A stretch of 62,338 nucleotides of DNA, the filler included, from Sluysia triapertura (Eukaryota), in NCBI GenBank assembly GCA_046118255.1. It is 5 parts of 5 records of this genome, joined end to end, with 100 filler letters (N's around TTAATTAATTAA, not from the genome) between each part and the next. Parts side by side here need not be neighbours in the genome. Positions count along the whole stretch, not along the records: positions 49,994 to 62,338 come from JBJNIA010118084.1; 4 more parts are not named here. One strand, written 5' to 3'. The notes beneath the pieces are model-generated. The model did not search any database and was not told where the DNA came from. It saw only the letters and a program-made list of their open reading frames with translations. A program made the translations under genes and the position numbers. Below, one piece after another: positions 49,994 to 62,338 of this stretch. Within the stretch, counting starts at the first letter, position 1. Every line of letters starts with the position of its first letter.

Positions 49994-50699
49994 ACATACT
50001 AATTATTATTAGTTTTATTATTATTACTATTTTATTACAATTTATTATTATTAAAGTCATTTTTATTATCATTATTATTTATTGTTATTATTTTTATTAT
50101 TATAATTATTTGTAAAATTGTCATTTTCATTTGCACCATGTGCCATCATTCAATACAGATTTTTCACCTGCACTAGTTGACAGATTTAAATTAAAAAGGC
50201 ACTATTTCATTATAATGATTGTCAACTAGTGGTAGTTACTATGCGCAAAATAATTAGTATATCTGTCAGTTGATTGGACATCCAATCATCCCTGTGTTAT
50301 TACACTCACTCTCTTAATACTCATTGGGAGTCCAATCACATTTGGTCTGACAATCATGTCTAGAAAATTATAATTCACAATTAAAAATATTATTTTGCTA
50401 ATACAAGACACTCAAAATATTAGAAATCTAATCAAAAATTTGTATTAATCAAATAACTTAAAGAGTAAAAAACAATTAGATCAAGTCAGATTAATTTATG
50501 CAATATGATTACGCCAAATCTGATAGATATCACTAAAAATCCTGATTTACGTCAAAATTTTATGTAATTGATATGTTTTATTTATAATCGTCTAAAGTCA
50601 TCATCATCATTGAGCAACCTCTACAATGGTAATTCATTTTCAATCATAGTACTAAATTTTATTCAAAAGTATACAGAAATTTGACTTTGAATATCGTAT

Positions 50700-51545
50700 A
50701 AAATTATCGTCCATTGATAAGTATCGTTGCTTGATAAGTACTCGTAATCAAGCTCAAAAAGATTTTATTTTATGTTTAGTCTTGCCAACATTACATCAAT
50801 TAAAAGTTAGTGATAGTAATCGAAAAGTATATGAATGCATAAGTATATCTTATCAGCAACAATACATTATTGAGTTTACCGAATTTTAGAGAAATTCTAC
50901 TTTAAGCGAATTACTTAGTCGAATAAGAAATAATTTTAATGATAATAAAAAAACCAAGCTCAATTATTTAAGTATATAATAATTCAATTGATACTTCAAA
51001 GCTAAGTCTTACTCTTGCTAAAAGTCAATTAAAGAATGATCAAATTCAAGAAATAACGTTACACATTGATATATGTAAAACATGAAATTCTTATACATAA
51101 TTCATGTCTATTTACAGGTATTCCTTGTTGCCTTAACGAAAGCCATGTAAATAAATATGATTCTAGAGAAGATAGATGTACAAGAGCGTGCATAATTCTA
51201 TCATATAATGTCGATTTGCTTGATAATAAAACTACAGTAGATTATTTAGCATTGATTCAACAGCCCACTTTCAACGATTATTCTTTTAACGAATTTGATA
51301 TCGCAAACAATTGTGTGCTTCCAATAACTACATCACTAATCAGTAATTCTTCAAATCAACAGAAATATGAATTCTTTCGTAAACACAAACGAACAGCTTA
51401 ATGTCCATTCCATTGAATAAATTGGGTGAATGCTATAAATATGGACAATCTTGTTATTTTTATCATAATATCTAAGAGATACGTTATATTTATGCTAAAC
51501 AAAACATTTAGATCACTTAGAACGTGTAAATAATTTAAGCTGATA
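50700..51545 (+). pseudogene. Disrupted ORF ending in a CCCH-type zinc finger (repeat-family copy 2)
   Basis: HKRTA*CPF...LGEC-YKYGQS-C-YFY-H-NI...HLERVNNL. Homologous to 12007-12170. Confidence 0.45.
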
Positions 51546-51939
51546 AAGTTAAAGATAAACTCATAGTTAACAAAAATAATGCTGAGTTCTTGGACAATAC
51601 TGCACCTACTAGTTCTGTTGATGATTTAGAATCAAAAGTAATTTTGATTCTTTTTATTTAAGAAATCCTTAATTGAAGAAACTTATGACGTGTCGAAATG
51701 AAAAGAGCCCATTCAACATCATAAATAACTCAGTATAACCTTTATGTTCAAGACAATAAAAAGTAAATCGCTGTTTGTTTTCTCGGTCATTTTGTTAATT
51801 ATGAAAAATAAATATAAATTATTAAATTATATTAAATTTATTTAATTTTATGAATCATGAAAAGAAAGCTTTTAAGTTAATTCATGTTAAAAACGCAAAT
51901 AAAGTTTATAATCATCATTTAACACCAAACATGCTTAAA

Positions 51940-53775
51940 GGTTTTATTAAGGTTCCAAAGTTATTTAGTAATTTATAAGGCATTCAGATGTTTTCACATT
52001 CACCTCTCTGATTCCTTTTTCTATTTCTTCATGTTAATTATTGCCATATGAAAGTATCTCTATTATTTTAAAGAAAGATTTTATTTCTCAAACATTTTAA
52101 ACATTTTATTCACTTTATAAAATTACTCGAAGATCTTCAATGCTTATCGAGGTTTCCAGAATACTTAAAGGTTAATAAGATTTCAGATGATCTCAAAATT
52201 AACAAACTATTATAATGCCTTCAAAGGTTTTTCAAGTCCACTGCAAGCCTCCACAAGGTCTCGACACCTTATATAAGTCTTTGGAATGTCAAGGTATTCT
52301 TTAACTGCGATAATTATTATAGATGTTTTTATTTTCGTTATTCTTTTTCCAATAATGGTTGAAATTTCAATCTATCAATTTGTATCAACTCTTTCTTCAC
52401 TTTGTGATTTTATGTCTCTTACTAATCTCCTAATCCACATTTGGACAATTCCAACATATCTCAGGCACCCAATTAAACATGATTAATTTGCCAACAATAG
52501 ACCGTATTTAAATTCAAAATTACAATAAAAAAATTTAAGAACCTAAACAAATATGTTCATTTTACAGAACATATCCGTCACAACAAGTCAGACACTAGGT
52601 CCCATTTCCACACCAGTGCAACATACAATACCATTTCCATCACTATAGAGACCTATCTTTCTCAATACTAATTCAAAACCAAACATGAAAGAAATCATCC
52701 AAAAACCAAATGCACAACCAACAACCTTCAACAAACTCATCAAATAAAAAATAAGAATAAAACTTTGACAATAAATTATAATACTTAGGTATCAAAAAAT
52801 TTGAAATTGAAAATAAATGTATTATTAATAAACTATAACTATTATTTAAGTCTCAGAAACGAATAAATAAATAATTTATCCATATTTAGTCAAATAATTT
52901 ATTTATATTTAACTAAATAAATCAAATAAGTACTTTAGGTAATTAATTTATGATTTGTTTAAATTTTTCAATAAAGATTTAAAATAAAGCATTTATTTTT
53001 TTTAATTGTTCAAAGATGTGACCATGGAAAATGTCACGCACATCGATGTAGCACAATTGATGTTGTGCAGAAAATTTCAAACTCACTTCTAAATTCTCCT
53101 CTTCCATAGCAATCATCTCGTATTCAATTCATTATATTTGCATCATTCTAAGAATAAAAAATTCAACATTGCAAAATTAAAAATTAATTAAAATTAAAGT
53201 TTTCCTTGCATGTACTCGGTCAAATTCAACATAGCATTCCGCATTCAAAAGTTATTCACAAAACGTCCTTTTTAATTAAGTTAATTAAGATTTTTAATTA
53301 TTAATTTATTTTTAGACTGAATCTTATTCTATTTTTAACGGTTTTATTGAACTTCTAAAGTTATTTAGTAATTTATAAGGCATTCAGGAGGTTCTAGATG
53401 TTTTCACCTTCACCTATCTGATTCCATTTTCTACTTCTTCATGTTAATTATTACTATACTAGATTTATTCTTAATACCAAAAACAATGATTTTATTTCTT
53501 AAATATTTTAAAGATTTTAAATACTTTATAAGGTTACTAAAGGATCTCAAATGCTCATCGATGTTCCAAGAATACTTAAAGGTTACTAAGGTCTAAAATG
53601 ATCTAAAGGTTCACAAGTTCAAAGAAACCTTAATGCTTCTAAAAGTTTTCCAAGTCATCCAAGCTTCCATAAAGTTTCAAACCCTTATATAGGTCTTTGG
53701 AACTCTAAGGAATTCTTTAGCTGTTAACATTATTATAGATGTTTTCAGTTTCATTATTCTTATTCCAACAATGTT
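51940..53775. repeat. Diverged ~430-bp direct duplication (51940-52360 and 53340-53775)
   Basis: Shared aaagttatttagtaatttataaggcattcag, gaatacttaaaggtta and ccttatata.gtctttggaa blocks in the same order. Confidence 0.8.
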
Positions 53776-56440
53776 TATCATTTTTTCCTTCATTTTATAA
53801 TTTTATATGTATTTATTCGTGTCGAGATCCCAACACAATTTAGTTCTAAATAATTTTCACAATCTACTTTACTATTATCGGACAAATCTGGTGTGTAAAG
53901 GTTTCATTAAGTTTACCTAAGTTGTAATTACGTCCAACTTTTGATTTCGGACTATCTCTGTTATTGTTGATTATTTGAGCAGTTTTTATAATCATATTAT
54001 TACATATATAATTTTGATTTTTCATTTCCAAAAAGGTTCATATGTCCAACAACAAGTTTCTTACATAATTCAAAATGAATAACAGAGCCTTACGATGGTA
54101 AATCAGTGCCTGCATAAGTTTCTATATATATTACATGCATTGCAGTAAAATTCTGTAACATTAAAAACTGATATGTTAAAAAATAACATTTTCTCATTAT
54201 TAAAGATAATATGAATGGCCTTTAGCGTACACCTCGGATAAATCATGCTTTTGAATCTTAGTTGAAAAGTTTTATAATTACGATCAACATGTTTACACGT
54301 TTTAGGTTGACTTTACACATCGGTTGAATCATCTTTTAATAATTCTTATATCAGATCACCTTTTGTATAAGAAATCGTAGATCATTTTAAAGCATCAATA
54401 ACTAGCAAATTCTTAGAAATTATCGATAAAGGACTTCAGTATTTTTAATTTATTTGCTTGGAGTCTTGGCCGTTTCATATAAGTATTACTTTTTTTATTT
54501 AGTAATATATTTATTTAATTTTCTAGTACTTTGTTTAAAATTATCTAAAAATTAATAAAAATTGCATTGTAAAATGTTTAAATATCAATTAAAAACTGTA
54601 ATAGATAAAACCATAATTAGATATAATAATATTATTACTATTATTACTCTAAGACTTTGCTGTTATAACTAGATATAACGTGATATAATATAATGTGATA
54701 TAATTTGTAAATTATTTTTTGTTTTTGATTATGAAATGAAAATATAGGCTTGACAATAATGACGCAATTTTTTAATTTTATATTAATTTTTGAATTTTTA
54801 ATTTTTAATTGCTTCACAAGAATGCAATAAGTTTGTTTGTTTCTTTATATATAATCGTTATAGAAATATGAATTCATTATTTTGACATCAAAATACATAT
54901 CATTCATGTCTCAATGGTGATAAAATTGTTATATTTTATATGTATTGAGTAATTTGTTTAATAATTTGTTTATGTAAGATGTGTTGATGTGTGTTTCTTT
55001 GTGATTGTGGTGAGTTGATTTTGAGTTAACCACAATCATAAATCTATTTTTTAAAGTCTTTGTCATTGTTTCTTCAAAATATTTTATTTTCACTTTCAAT
55101 TTTATGGCATTAATTTACAAATTTATTGAATTTGCATTTTTTATGAAGTTATTTTGACATCTAGATTATATTTTTAAAAATGTAAATAGAATCTTTAATG
55201 TATTTTTATTGCAGTTTTATTTATTAAGATAATCCTAACTTATTGAGTCCTATGAAAGAATAAAAATAACGAACTTTATATCGACTTTATTTATTTTTTG
55301 AAGTTATAATTAGAAATAATTAGAAACAAGTTTAAATAAATCGAATAGTTCACGTTTAAATTAATGTGTTCATCAAGTTAAAAATAGAAAATCAATAATT
55401 GTAATGTATAAATTNNNNNNNNNNNNNNNNNNNNNNNNNNNNNNNNNNNNNNNNNNNNNNNNNNNNNNNNNNNNNNNNNNNNNNNNNNNNNNNNNNNNNN
55501 NNNNNNNNNNNNNNNNNNNNNNNNNNNNNNNNNNNNNNNNNNNNNNNNNNNTAAAATTTTGTTAATTTTGTTATAATTGACTAAAGACGTCACGGTCAGG
55601 TTAAAAGTAGTGTATAAAGAATAATATTTACAGTAAAAGAGACAAAAAATTTGATAAATTTGTAATCTTTGGAGAAGAACTTGATTCTTATTGAAGATAC
55701 ATATCGCTGAAGAAATAAATCATAATTCTTTAAGAAAATTTGAGATCTATTACTGTATTCGTTAGTTAATTTTTATATAAGTTTTAATTTATTTTTAAAA
55801 GAACAGTAAATTTTGCTTAATTTTCATAATTGATTTAAAAAGAGATCGTTTTAAATCATCTAGCCAAATAACCTTTAATATTGCAAAAGAAAAGGTTATA
55901 TTAAAATCTATAAACTTTTATCTATATTATAATAACTGAATTGTAAATTTTTTCTGTATTTCATATAGTATACTTTATTAGTTATTATTTAGTTGTTTAA
56001 TTGATATCGAATTATAAGGTACCGATTTTATATTCGGCCACAACATATACACTTAAACTTTAGAGAATTTTTAGAAAAATAGAAACCGATTTTATCGGTA
56101 GTAAAATCAATTAAAACCATTTTAATAAAAGGAACGGTAAATTCATTATTAACATCTTTTCGAGTAAAATGTATTACCCTACAATCCATTAAAAATCTAA
56201 TTGCCAAGTAAATGCATTATAATTTCTTAAAATATTCTGATCATTACACTGACATTGTCCAATAAAACATTATAATTCATTAGACATTTAATAGATTATT
56301 GATCACTGTTAACCTCCATTAACTATCTTTTGTTTGCTACTTACAACTTAGCCCTTAAGTGTGTAAGACTAAGATTGTAAGGAACTCACGTAAATTACAT
56401 TTCTTGAGTGCATAACGCAAAAAAATATTGTAAAATAAAC

Positions 56441-57384
56441 TGGTGCCTAGAGTGAGGATCGGCATTCAGAAGAATATATAAGATAAATATAGATTTCACA
56501 TGTGTAAGTATAAGTGTTATAAATCTTAATTTCATTTAAAAAGTTACATTGCTCTACCCTAAACTAATTAAGATTATAAGTAAGTAAGATTTAAGCAATA
56601 AGTAGATAAGCAAATTGCTACAGAGCAAAACTATGTTGCATTGCCTAATGATTTTAAAGAATGTATGGCTCACTTAGCCAGAGATATGTGCCTTATAATG
56701 GCATTTCTTGAAATGAAAAAAATTGACGGAGCAGAGGAAGATCTCTGAGATTTCTTATTTGAATATGAAAGTATCGCCGAAGCAAACGGCTGGAATGAAC
56801 CCGAAAAAATAAAAATAATTCAGAATTATTTAACTGGAGTGGCGATAATAAGGAAATAAGTAATAATAATAAACAATATTTGAATGAATTTGTTAACGCC
56901 TTTACTGAGGAAATAGAACTCGACGACATGGGAAAATACTGGACTAAAATGTTAAATGCAAGAAAGCAAAAATCAAACGAACCTATATATGAATTCGCTT
57001 GTGGTCTTAAAAGTCTTGTTGCCAGAACAAAGTCTCTGAAGATAAAAAAGAATCGATATTAATAGACAAATTAAAAACTGGCTTACGACCAGAATTAAGG
57101 ACATGTGCTACCTTAATTGGAGGTAAACCTTTTAAAGAAATAATTAAGAAATTAAGAAGTCTAGAACGATCTTATAAAGATAACATTATATAAGTGATAA
57201 CGAAGATAAAAATAAAGTAGATAAAAGTCCCAAAATAAGAAGAAATATAAATAATTATAATTATAGATAATTATAATAATAATTCAAATTATGATAGATA
57301 TAACGATCGAAATAGTAGAGGTAATTCAAATAATTATAGAGGTAATACAAATAATTATAGAGGTAATACAAATAATTATAACAC

Positions 57385-57419
<35 letters not shown>

Positions 57420-57655
57420 GGAGTAAAGGGTTCATAACAATAAAATAAGTAAATATGGTGCATCTAACTATGAGAAAAGACCAGCACCAAGATGGACACC
57501 TAATTCTAATATTAATAATCCAAATAATTATAGAAATAGAAGCAAAAACCCAATAAGATATGAAAATAATAAGACACAAACTAACATAGATGGGGAAATA
57601 AATTTCGATAATTGCGGTAAGTATGGACACTATGCAAGGAACTGCAGAAAATTAA
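56441..57655 (+). mobile_element. Ty3/Gypsy element 5' part: PBS and disrupted gag with CCHC knuckle
   Basis: PBS TGGTGCCTAGAGTGAGGATCG resembles the complement of the elongator tRNA-Met 3' end. gag reads DGAEEDL.DFLFEYESIAEANGWNEPEK..YLTGVA, RKQKSNEPIYEFA, KTGLRPEL and DNCGKYGHYARNCRK. Confidence 0.85.
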
Positions 57656-58065
57656 AACAAAATATGTTTACTCAAAATTTTACTAAGGTAAGTGGTCCAC
57701 AACAACAAAGATGCTAAAGTCCTAATAGGAGAATAAGATTCAATGATAATAAAAACGATAAGGGACAAATAAATTGCAATTATAAAAATCAGGCAAATTA
57801 CAAGTTTAAAGATGGAATGAATGAATATAAAGAAAAACCTGAAATTCTTGAAATTTTTTCTCAACATATTTAATCTAATATTTTGTTTAAATAAAGCGAA
57901 ATGTGGAAATTGACAAAAAATGGAGTATAAATACTATTTCGATCAAATTAAATTCAATTTAATTGGTTATTGGATATTATATAAAATAATTTTTATTTAA
58001 AATATTACATAAAGCAAAAAGTCGATAATAATTTTTATAAAAAAATAAAAATTTAATTAAAAAAA

Positions 58066-61000
58066 ATGAAAAAATTTTTTAACAAACATGGTACCAATAA
58101 TAAGCTTACTCATCTTAAACAAGAATCTACTATGGATGAACATATAATCAGTTTAGATGAATTGGTAAAACGTCTTGAAACTAATATAGAGACTGGTAAA
58201 GAAGCATCAACTGCTAAGTTACAATTAGAAAAAGACGGTAAAAATGCATTAACACCTCCACCAGATAATTCTAAATTAATTATGTTTTTAAAACAATTAT
58301 TTGGCGGTTTTCAAATTTTACTTTGGATAGGTTCTTTGCTATGTTTGGTAGCTTACGTGATTACTTATGCTACTATGCGTGTACCACCCAAAGATAATTT
58401 ATATTTGGGTATTGTATTAGCAGCAATTGTAATATTAACTGGTTTGTTTGCTTATTATCAAGAAGCTAAATCTAATTCAATAATGGATTCCTTTAACAAA
58501 ATGGTACCTCAACAAGCAACAGTTATTCGTGAAGGTAAAGTTATCTCATTACCAGCTGATGAATTAGTTGTTGGTGATTTAGTTGATATAAAAAGTGGTG
58601 ATCGTATACCAGCTGATGTTAGGATTTTAAATTCATCAAATTTTAAAGTAGATAATTCTGCCTTAACAGGTGAATCAGAACCACAAGTTCGTAGTGCTGA
58701 ATTTACTAATGCTAATCCTTTAGAAACGAGAAATTTAGCGTTTTTTACAACAATGGCTGTTGAAGGTAATGCACGTGGTATTGTAGTAAATACTGGTGAT
58801 AGAACAGTTATTGGGCGTATTGCTACTTTAACTACAAATATTGTTGGCACTGAAACGCCAATTAGACGTGAAATAAATCACTTTATTAATATTATTACTT
58901 ATATTGCTTTTGTTAGCGGTATATGCGTATTTGTTGCATCTTTAGTGTTGGGTAATCCATGGATTGATGCTGTTTTATTTCTAATTGGTGTAATCATAGC
59001 AACTGTACCGGAAGGTTTGTTACCAACTGTTACTGTAGCTTTAACATTAACAGCTAAACGAATGGCTTCTAAAAATTGTTTAGTACGAAATTTAGAAGCT
59101 GTTGAAACGTTAGGCTCAACGAGTATAATATGTTCAGATAAAACTGGTACATTAACTCAAAACCGTATGACAGTTGCTCATGTGTGGTATGATGATGTTA
59201 TACATGAAATGGATACTACTGGTGGTTTAGTACCCGAAGAAATTAAAAGTGAATTGATGGAATCTAAAACGTGGGATTATATGGGTTTGATTGGCTTATT
59301 GTGCAATAAAGCCGAATTTGAAGCTAATCAAGATGGTTTACCAATTTATAGGCGTGCATGCAGCGGTAGTGGTTCAGAAATTGGTATTTTAAAATGTTTT
59401 GAAAGATATTATAAAAGTAATATTACTGTTCGTAAAGAAAATAAATTGATAGCTGAAATACCATTTAATTCAACAACAAAACTACATTTTACTGTTTATG
59501 AAATTAATGGTGCTAATTATGTGTTAATGAAAGGTGCACCTGAACGTGTTATTGAGCGTTGTTCAAGTATTTTAATAAAAGGTGAATATCAAAATTTATC
59601 CGAATCATGGAAAGAACGCTTTCAAATGGTTTATGAAGAACTAGGAGGTATGGGTGAACGTGTTTTAGGTTTTTCTATGTTAAAATTACCAGAATCAAAA
59701 TTTCCATTAGGCTTTAAATTTAATACTGATGATGTAAATTTTCCAGAAAGTGGATTAGTATTCATTGGTTTAATATCTATGATAGATCCACCTAGGGCCT
59801 CTGTACCAACTGCTGTAGAAAAATGTAAACGAGCAGGAATTAAAGTTGTAATGGTAACCGGTGACCATCCAATCACCGCTGTCGCAATAGCACGTAATGT
59901 TGGTATTATTGATTATAATTCGATTTTAGCCAATGATGTAGCCAAAGCTAATAATAAATCAATAATAGATATGAAAAATAGTAAAGAAGCTCAAGCTATT
60001 GTTATAACAGGTACTGAATTGAAAAATATTTCTCCACCTGATTTAATATCGATTGTATCTAATTTTCCACAGATAGTATTTGCACGTACAAGTCCACAAC
60101 AAAAATTGATTATTGTTGAAGCATTTCAGAATGACGGGAGAATCGTTGCTGTTACTGGTGATGGTGTTAATGACAGTCCAGCATTGAAACAAGCTGACAT
60201 TGGTATTGCTATGGGTATAACAGGGAGTGATGTCAGTAAACAAGCGGCTGATATGGTTTTATTGGATGATAATTTTTCTAGTATTGTAGTTGGAGTCGAG
60301 GAAGGGCGCATTATTTTTGATAATTTGAAAAAAACCATAACTTATACGTTATCATCGAAAATTCCAGAATTAGTACCATTTTTATGTTATTTAATTTTTA
60401 GTATACCATTGCCATTAGGACCTATTACTATCTTATTGATCGACCTAGGTACAGATTTATTACCATCAATTGCTGTGGCTTATGAAACTGCAGAAGCAGA
60501 TATCATGTCAAGGCCACCACGTGATGCGAAAACGTCTCGCTTAGTTGGTGACATATTAATATCAGTATCATATGGACATTATGGAGTTTACAATGTAGTA
60601 GCTGGATTTTTTACGTATTTCATTATAATGGGTCAAAACGGCTTTAAAGTAAGTAAATTAGTAGGTCTTCGTGATCAATGGGACGATATTTCGATTCAGA
60701 TCGTAACGGATTCGTACGATCAAGAATGGAGTTACAATCAACGTAAAAGTCTTGAATACACCGCTCAAACAGGTTATTTCAATGCAATTGTTATTATGCA
60801 GTGGTTTGTATTGTTCGTATGTAAAACGCGGAAAAATTCCTTTTTTCATCAAGGTATGCACAATATGCCAATGAATATATCTCTGGTCGCTGAAACATGT
60901 CTAGCATTATTTGTAACATATGCACCTTGTGAAAATATACTGCGAACTTATCCATTGTGGCATCAATGGTGGTACCCGGCTTTCCCTGTTGGAATACTTT

Positions 61001-61083
61001 TGTTTGTACAAGATGAAATACGTAAATGTTTTATAAGAAAGTTACCTCCTGGTAACTGGGTGGAAAAAGAAACTTATTATTAA
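58066..61083 (+). CDS. ATP1A: Na+/K+-ATPase alpha subunit (P2C P-type ATPase), intronless, divergent cation sites
   Basis: 1005-aa ORF with TGES, PEGL, DKTGT, KGAPE, DPPR, MVTGD, GDGVND, IDLGTD and C-terminal WVEKETYY. Confidence 0.97.
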
Positions 61084-61335
61084 AGTAAAAAATATTCTCT
61101 TTCTATTTATTGATTTGTAACAAAATTCATTGTAATTTATTTTTTAATGCCGGATTACTGAATCCATCAAAAATGTAATTTTAATTTTGTAGTGCTAAAC
61201 AGTAGAACATGTGGATTTTTCTTATTTATATTTATGGTGATCCTTTTCTAAAGGCTCCAATATAGACAAATTATCTCAATTTAATTCTCCCTGGTACGAT
61301 GTACGAATCCTCGATTAATAAGTTATAGTATATAA

Positions 61336-62338
61336 TAGGGTGGATTGAAAAAGAGAAAATATTGGAATATCATTACGGAACTCCGTATTTATTTGACAAA
61401 TGACCTCTGAAATAAGAAACAAAATTTTAAATTGCTTTTGTATTAAAGGAAGTGCCCCATTTTTAAATCTGAAAAATTGCATTAATCAGCATTTTCAGCT
61501 TGATGCATTCTATTATTACTTTATTAATTTTAAGATTTAGCATGTATATTTTGCTTCTACTTTGTATGTCTGTTGTTTATTTCGATTGTAGGTTATTTAT
61601 TTAGAACAATACATTGAATGTTTGTAACTTAATGACTATGCGAACTTCCTAACAATGTACTGTCAACAAATCTTCAAGTTGCATAGTATTTCTTGCATAT
61701 GAAAAAAGAAAGAATGATTTAAACAAAGACAAATACAGAGCTGTATGAGATGCTGTTATCAGTCTGTGGAACAAAGCTTCCAATCCCACGATCTGAATCA
61801 GGTTCAGAACTGTCTCGTTCTAAATTAAGTTCAACACCTTTCTAGCCACTTTGGACTCATTGTTTGATATATCTGCATGTAAGTGCAGTATGTCTTATGA
61901 CAATTCTATAAAACAATTCTATAAAATTTGAAAGTTCCACCAGATGAACTGTTGTTTTTATATGATCAAAAAAACTTTCGCAAAATGTAGACTTGCAAAT
62001 ATAGACTTCCAAGCAACAACCAGACTTCAGAAGCGTTTACAACGGAAAACTAAAGAAGAAACGAGATGTAAAATGTCAAGAAAATTTTCAAATGCTGAGA
62101 GTAACTTAAATCTTAGTGAAGAACAATCTAGTAACAGTTGTGCAAGTGATCAAAGTGTTGTAGAGTACAGCGATGACGATAGTGATGATAAATTCGGTAG
62201 TAGTGATGATGTAGGTGAAAGTCAGATACGAATACCCCTTCAATATTATGCAAAAGAAGCAGACAGATGATGATATTGCTAAATTCAGCAATGAGCCACT
62301 CACTTTGAATTACAAGAACCACACTCAAGGAGTGGAAC
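61336..62338 (+). mobile_element. DNA transposon 5' part with disrupted transposase (hATm-like), running off the window
   Basis: Starts TAGGGTGG. Translation gives LPNNVLST, LWNKAS.PT, LFDISACKC and KVPPDELLFLYDQKNFRKM. The superfamily label is from memory of such elements. Confidence 0.6.

Follow-up and report, generated by a model that had tools for sequence, protein, structure and literature searches.

A divergent intron-free P2C ATPase gene

The window analysed here is a stretch of 62,338 nucleotides of DNA from Sluysia triapertura (assembly GCA_046118255.1), and the gene of interest in it encodes a divergent P2C (Na,K/H,K-type) ATPase alpha subunit. The gene lies in the piece at 49994-62338 (record JBJNIA010118084.1), which is strongly AT-rich with a GC content of 0.17-0.37 and holds a single long open reading frame (ORF). 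There are no stops in the coding frame compared with 44-123 in each of the other five frames. The features of the gene are as follows, with ion-site residues also given in pig alpha1 numbering.

58066-61083, + strand: complete intron-free coding sequence (CDS) of a divergent P2C ATPase alpha subunit, 1005 amino acids plus stop
59002-59004, + strand: T313, pig N324T (M4), codon ACT; this removes the Asn whose hydrogen bond goes to N776 in Na-bound E1
59023-59040, + strand: M4 signature LLPTVTVAL with P320 (pig A331P, codon 59023-59025) and A325 (pig C336A, codon 59038-59040), in common with a trematode paralogue that also carries Lys at 776
59137-59139, + strand: D358, the phosphorylated Asp of DKTGT
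60352-60372, + strand: M5 S763-S764-K765-I-P-E768-L769, pig T774S, S775, N776K, P778, E779, I780L
60592-60594, + strand: N843, pig Q854N (M7); in the site table, Asn at this position is confined to this protein and P0001, its closest relative
60799-60822, + strand: M8 Q912-W913-F914-V915-L-F-V-C919, pig Q923, W924, A925F, D926V, C930; the site III carboxylate is lost
60889-60894, + strand: A942 (GCT, 60889-60891) and E943 (GAA, 60892-60894), pig 953 and 954; E954 is kept
61066-61080, + strand: C-terminal KETYY, kept

All five P-type ATPase domains (Cation_ATPase_N, E1-E2_ATPase, Cation_ATPase, Hydrolase and Cation_ATPase_C) scored above the Pfam gathering scores, and the catalytic and conserved motifs are present at amino acids 201 (TGES), 358 (DKTGT), 489 (KGAPE), 596 (MVTGD), 697 (TGDGVND) and 1001 (KETYY). 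In a phmmer search of the PDB the top matches were Na,K-ATPase alpha1 chains (E=0, 1275-1288 bits), followed at lower scores by Artemia alpha2KK (1186 bits), the non-gastric H,K-ATPase (1142), the gastric H,K-ATPase (~1100) and SERCA (~345). Residues 13-1005 of the query pair with residues 24-1016 of pig 3wgu_A, which gives a constant offset of 11. Together, the domains, the catalytic motifs and the full-length PDB matches far above SERCA identify the gene as one for a P2C ATPase alpha subunit. No beta-subunit gene was found within the piece at 49994-62338.

Remodelled ion sites and the transport they predict

The departures from the pig protein are clustered in the ion sites. The HMMER alignment (window/pig) reads iaTvpeg/vaNvpeg in M4, ytlsSKipe/ytltSNipe in M5, mqwFVl/vqwADl in M8 and lvAEt/lfEEt at 953-954. 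K765, the equivalent of N776K, has the codon AAA at 60358-60360, and F914 (TTT) and V915 (GTA) occupy 60805-60810 (V915 at 60808-60810), the equivalents of A925F and D926V. The residue calls, offset and coordinates given in the first-pass annotation of this DNA proved right when the codons were read directly, and the alignment likewise bore out its list of retained residues (E327, Y771, E779, D804, D808, Q923, E954 and the KETYY tail). The full set of kept residues in pig numbering is E327, Y771, T772, S775, E779, D804, T807, D808, Q923, W924, C930, R933 and E954, with the site I and II carboxylates (E327, E779, D804 and D808) intact. By contrast, the site III set is altered by D926V, Q854N, T774S and A925F, with Y771, Q923, W924, E954 and C930 unchanged.

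Canonical Na,K-ATPases have Asn at both 324 and 776, where the window protein has T313 and K765. Among the 120 best matches from 5.8 billion proteins N776 is present in 117, D926 in 119 and N324 in 117, and the near-invariance of N776 and D926 in this set shows that the window residues are real departures. A wider site table added Q854N, T774S and I780L to the changes listed earlier. In all the K776 lineages examined other than a toad pump, the lysine comes together with I780L. E953A had also been listed as a change of note, but this position is uninformative since it is Phe in 84 of the same 120 matches and Glu only in vertebrate-type sequences. Outside the ion sites, alignment to pig shows T100 (pig Q111T, codon 58363-58365) at the first residue of the M1-M2 cardiotonic-steroid site, with N122 retained; substitutions at Q111 reduce ouabain sensitivity in other animals.

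The published work on these positions allows predictions about transport. In the Na+-only site III, Q923 and D926 serve as side-chain ligands (PMC9463140), in agreement with the role assigned to D926 in the first-pass annotation. Neutralising this Asp (alpha3 D923N) cuts Na+ affinity >100-fold and leaves K+ affinity untouched, the Na,K-pump becomes electroneutral when the Asp is neutralised through C930R, and Gln873 of the non-gastric H,K-ATPase, the equivalent of Q854, is described as coordinating site III (PMC9463140). A lysine at 776 in M5 sits inside the ion cavity, where it stands in for one bound cation, so that N333K/N785K pumps carry 2Na:1K (PMC10756188). In the same study the role of N324/N333 was given as a hydrogen bond with N776 in Na-bound E1, and the single N785K mutant showed a reduced Na+ and a reduced K+ affinity, with Lys at the 324 position rescuing K+ affinity in Artemia.

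From these comparisons we consider it reasonably probable, at about 60%, that the gene encodes a functional, single-copy, intron-free Na,K-ATPase alpha paralogue whose remodelled ion sites would move fewer ions per ATP than 3Na:2K, and that it is probably an old retrocopy. By analogy with the published mutants, D926V together with Q854N, T774S and A925F would disable Na+ binding at site III. K765 would act as a tethered cation that fills one of the shared sites, with its Asn partner at 324 gone. With site III disabled and one shared site held by K765, one transported cation would be left in each direction: one cytoplasmic cation (Na+ or, less likely, H+) would leave for each K+ that enters, with little or no net charge moved. 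Fewer ions per ATP would mean more free energy per ion and therefore a steeper Na+ gradient, as has been proposed for uptake from dilute water.

The main rival to this is that the protein is an H+/K+-type or non-selective cation/K+ exchanger in which protons replace Na+ as the exported ion. We regard this as improbable, if the most serious of the alternatives. It was predicted in 2022 that strict H+ selectivity requires a destroyed site III and a site I occupied by a tethered lysine (PMC9463140), and the loss of D926, the altered Q854 and the M5 lysine match that prediction. The window protein resembles the gastric and non-gastric H,K-ATPases, and Na,K-ATPase C930R, in a putatively disabled site III and, with the H,K-ATPases, a tethered M5 lysine, a combination that predicts electroneutral exchange. 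The means differ, because H,K-ATPases keep the Asp and neutralise it through Arg 930, and have Lys at 775, Ile at 924 and Ala at 778, whereas in the window protein the markers S775, P778, W924 and C930 are all in the Na,K state. In addition, the lysine is at 776 rather than 775, and Lys at this position (785 in that study), unlike Lys at 775, preserves Na+ selectivity (PMC10756188). The PDB scores also favour Na,K-ATPase alpha1 (1288 bits) over either H,K-ATPase.

It is less likely still that the pump works at 3Na:2K, or electrogenically at 2Na:1K, because the loss of D926 is compensated or the lysine swings away, so that the substitutions tune affinities only. The residues that support site III (Q923, Y771, W924, E954, C930 and the KETYY tail) are retained, and Artemia alpha2KK with K776 remains electrogenic (PMC10756188). 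On the other side, neutralising D926 alone has the large effect on Na+ affinity described above and C930R is enough for electroneutrality, and here the Asp is replaced by Val with Q854N and T774S in addition. A reduced ion count with Na+ as the probable exported ion thus remains the reading that we prefer.

Constraint, surroundings and relatives

Among 5.8 billion proteins there is a single close relative, P0001, whose identity is 71% across the protein and 77% within M5-M10. This full-length ORF lies on a 3503-nt Logan contig (L001) from run SRR33002330, which is a different sample from the window. The window protein itself has no entry in the contig index. All other proteins, including canonical human, insect and flatworm pumps, are at most about 59% identical. 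P0001 shares T324, K776, V926 and N854 with the window protein; the K776 codon is AAG in P0001 and AAA in the window, and V926 is GTA in both. Between the window gene and L001 the nonsynonymous divergence (dN) is 0.239 and the synonymous divergence (dS) is saturated. Because the same T/K/V/N set occurs in a 71% identical relative at this dN and with saturated dS, the state is inherited and kept by selection. These sequence comparisons indicate constraint on the pump in two species or more, and that its unusual residues are neither sequencing errors nor drift in a dead copy.

One public sequencing run contains the stretch. In it a single 3703-nt unitig at a depth of ~20 covers the gene without a differing letter in the CDS; the sole differing letter of this unitig is upstream of the ATG. 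Thus, reads with Asn or Asp at the altered codons, a check proposed in the first-pass annotation, were not seen, but this run may be the source sample and so does not count as independent support. No run recorded as RNA contains the gene, the run above being the only one in total that contains the stretch. The surroundings of the gene are as follows.

57000-57884: high-copy repeat upstream, depth 2x10^3 to 9x10^3, with a degenerate gag-like zinc-knuckle remnant
57663-61365: single-copy island, one 3703-nt unitig, with repeats on both sides
61248-62300: high-copy repeat downstream, summed word depth 3x10^4 to 9x10^4 compared with ~20 for the gene

Within the upstream repeat, an open stretch at 57433-57717 (+ strand) has a degenerate CCHC-type zinc knuckle at its end (NCGKYGHYARNC) and resembles a retroelement gag remnant. 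The downstream repeat holds an acidic, Ser-rich ORF of 108 amino acids at 61944-62270. The piece also has a run of N at ~55410-55550, which is an assembly gap or mask.

These surroundings bear on whether the gene is a retrocopy under relaxed constraint, or a non-pumping copy that is decaying or regulatory, with odd residues that reflect drift. The gene is intron-free and sits amid transposon remnants, its branch is long (0.53-0.59), it was found in no RNA run, and a conserved SYGQ has become SYDQ. We nonetheless consider such a fate very unlikely given the 1005 open codons, the catalytic motifs that are all intact, and the relative that has the same four residues at a dN of 0.239 and saturated dS.

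By the residues compared, the structurally closest kin of the window gene appears to be a trematode paralogue with K776. Its members, which are annotated merely as Na/K-ATPase alpha, come from Clonorchis (P0368), Opisthorchis (P0369), Paragonimus (P0371 and P0372), Fasciola gigantica (P0374) and Echinostoma (P0375). Like the window gene, this paralogue has K776, a replaced N324 (Met in the trematodes), I780L, the M4 signature LLPTVTVAL with A331P and C336A, and no introns. Unlike the window gene, it retains D926 and Q854. A literature search returned no report of a flatworm K776 pump. The intron-free K776 genes are 3012 nt long in Clonorchis, 3003 nt in Paragonimus and 3096 nt in Fasciola gigantica; as a comparison, the extent of the canonical Clonorchis gene is 32.9 kb and that of a rotifer gene with K776 and V926 is 12 kb. 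The uninterrupted CDS in the window and the uninterrupted trematode genes beside a 32.9-kb canonical Clonorchis gene make it probable that the window gene began as an old retrocopy, and this gene and the trematode paralogue may share one retrocopy origin.

In Clonorchis (L002, CM030369.1) and Paragonimus (L005, JTDE01003231.1) a kinase gene of opposite orientation adjoins or encloses the intron-free K776 gene. The Clonorchis neighbour is of the MAGUK type (Pkinase, L27, PDZ, SH3 and guanylate kinase domains) and in Paragonimus it is a partial protein-kinase product only. This neighbourhood may be conserved. When the flanks of the trematode K776 genes were compared with the window piece by tblastx, the matches were at chance level only. 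An older Clonorchis model, P0003 (GAA48524.1), has an internal tandem duplication of ~155 residues that is absent from the newer 1003-amino-acid P0368 and probably arose as an error of annotation or assembly.

Phylogenetic analysis placed the window gene and P0001 as a pair. The careful tree puts this pair within the radiation of bilaterian pumps (97/93), where three long branches form a polytomy, and outside the vertebrate clade. One quick tree joined the pair to Clonorchis with a support of 82 and a second left the relation open. The likelihood of a joint trematode and window clade was slightly above that of the free quick tree. There were too few phylum-diagnostic columns for a decision, with the window protein and P0001 matching two of six flatworm columns and one of four deuterostome columns. 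The gene was labelled a flatworm one in the first-pass annotation; this label outruns the trees, which leave the sister group open, and we consider a flatworm affiliation plausible.

Recurrence of the lysine and its meaning

To see how often Lys occurs at 776 we combined an exhaustive search of cluster representatives, two region-limited searches and a motif scan of metagenomes. The lineages found, with their residues at 324, 776 and 926, are as follows.

Window gene and P0001: T324, K776, V926
Didymodactylos carnosus (bdelloid rotifer): K324, K776, V926
Seven rotifer-like metagenome loci: K776, V926
Sphaerothecum (protist): N324, K776, V926
Nonionella (foraminifer): N324, K776, A926
Cluster P0133: N324, K776, I926
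Cluster P0151: N324, K776, A926
Cluster P0164: S324, K776, A926
Cluster P0153: T324, K776, T926
Cluster P0136: I324, K776, D926
Daphnia: K324, K776, D926
Rhinophrynus (toad) alpha1-like: N324, K776, D926
Trematode paralogue (Clonorchis, Opisthorchis, Paragonimus, Fasciola gigantica, Echinostoma): M324, K776, D926

In raw counts D926 is absent from 9 of 12 K776 rows compared with 5 of 42 N776 rows. These searches show that K776 has arisen several times. In the trees the Daphnia and toad K776 pumps each fall among canonical pumps of the group that they belong to, which supports an origin of the window lysine separate from theirs and, by the same argument, from that of the lysine in fish alpha1a. 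We therefore take the resemblance to fish and branchiopod pumps as convergence. The first-pass annotation had proposed independent evolution, and this holds up against the fish and branchiopod lysines but less well nearer to home, where K776 may come from an older intron-free paralogue that is also in trematodes.

The metagenome scan found 11 K776 loci, all of them rotifer-like or partial and none near the window gene. Seven of these are low-GC (0.25-0.31) eukaryotic contigs (L010, L014, L021, L028, L034, L037 and L046) with short introns and K776/V926 pumps (VQWTVLLCCKSR), whose proteins are most like the bdelloid rotifer protein. Other departures were seen in single pumps. A second pump of the ostracod Darwinula stevensoni (P0373) has Lys at 775, which is the H,K-ATPase position, with M324, P778T, D926N and C930L; because it adjoins the canonical Darwinula pump in the tree, an H,K-like state seems to have evolved inside the crustacean Na,K-pump lineage. 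Otherwise canonical pumps with departures at the ion sites include the alpha1-like N776K pump of Rhinophrynus dorsalis (P0094), an alpha1-like D926I pump of Acipenser oxyrinchus (P0319) and aphid pumps with N324A/E779Q/D926N (P0288 and P0289).

The bdelloid rotifer pump (Didymodactylos carnosus CAF1030376.1, P0273) has K776, V926, T774S, I780L and a near-identical M5. It differs from the window protein in K324, a canonical M4 (LLATVTVCL), Q854 and the presence of introns (a 12 kb gene, and short introns in the metagenome loci). The near-identical M5, the similarly low GC of the rotifer K776/V926 pumps, and an approximately unbiased (AU) test that leaves a rotifer sister group unrejected raise the question of whether the window gene comes from a contaminating or associated organism such as a rotifer rather than from the assembled animal. 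Of the explanations considered we give this one the least credence, because the gene is contiguous with repeats that occur in thousands of copies in that run, it lacks the introns seen in the rotifer genes, and its product is no closer in identity to the rotifer protein than to canonical pumps.

Artemia franciscana alpha2KK (PDB 8k1l) and the Daphnia KK pump also have Lys at 776, a replaced Asn 324 and I780L. In the first-pass annotation Artemia alpha2KK was compared for its lysines at 324 and 776 and its reduced ion stoichiometry; PMC10756188 supports this, with a measured 2Na:1K. The branchiopod pumps group with canonical crustacean pumps. Two differences separate alpha2KK from the window protein: the latter has Thr rather than Lys at 324, and it has lost the site III Asp, whereas alpha2KK retains all site III residues (its Asp906 included). 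Because Artemia retains site III, the analogy understates the change. For the window pump a stoichiometry lower than 2Na:1K, rather than equal to it, would be expected.

A further likeness is to the freshwater gill alpha1a of salmonids, which reportedly has Lys at pig 776 and Val at 926 and is said to have been proposed to move less Na+ per ATP for uptake in freshwater. The salmonid and window pumps would then share the K776/V926 pair, and differ in that the window protein retains E954 (said to be Ser in salmon) and adds N324T and Q854N. Salmonid alpha1a is also a recent alpha1 duplicate, whereas the window gene belongs to a deep intron-free lineage that is 58-59% identical to any alpha1. In PMC10756188, a K785-containing freshwater fish alpha1 is mentioned and the title of Jorgensen 2008, with its 'lysine, valine and serine substitutions', is cited. 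These two items lend the likeness drawn in the first-pass annotation some support. The dilute-water argument is in keeping with the presence of a K/V pair in rotifers and, reportedly, in salmonid gills.

A more inclusive reading is that the window gene and P0001 are electroneutral exchangers of one cation for one K+, with a dismantled site III and a tethered lysine in one of the shared sites. On this view flatworms, including trematodes, would have retained an old family of intron-free retrogenes alongside their canonical pump, and the two genes would stand at its derived end. Separate origins of the K/V pair would follow here, in rotifers and in salmonids, the last two from fresh or dilute water. 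We offer this tentatively and think it rather doubtful as a whole.

Several observations weigh against the reading that we prefer, of a functional old retrocopy that moves fewer ions per ATP. The M7-M8 beta-binding loop has SYDQ in the window protein and SYGQ in P0001 and all others compared. Thr at 324, in place of the Lys that rescues affinity in Artemia, could mean that activity is poor or that specificity is different. The pairing of K776 with loss of D926 was not significant on phylogenetically independent pairs (median p 0.6), of which there were too few. With regard to the trematode link, AU tests rejected neither a trematode sister clade (p 0.54) nor a rotifer one (p 0.59), and no indels shared with the trematode paralogue were found.

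If the window gene and P0001 are such electroneutral exchangers of one cation for one K+, their Na+/H+ selectivity would be a direct test of the 2022 prediction on the origin of H,K-pumps from Na,K-pumps. Sodium pumps of reduced stoichiometry were first demonstrated in 2023, in Artemia only, and other K785-containing pumps were named as the next to examine (PMC10756188). The window gene would go one step further by combining the lysine with the loss of site III, and it is a ready construct for questions of ion count and proton selectivity. It is also a pointer to an unannotated family of intron-free K776 pumps in liver and lung flukes. Together, the sequence data indicate that this gene joins the known lysine-substituted noncanonical sodium pumps, that the dismantling of its site III appears unusually complete, and that the intron-free family in flukes is an unreported one.

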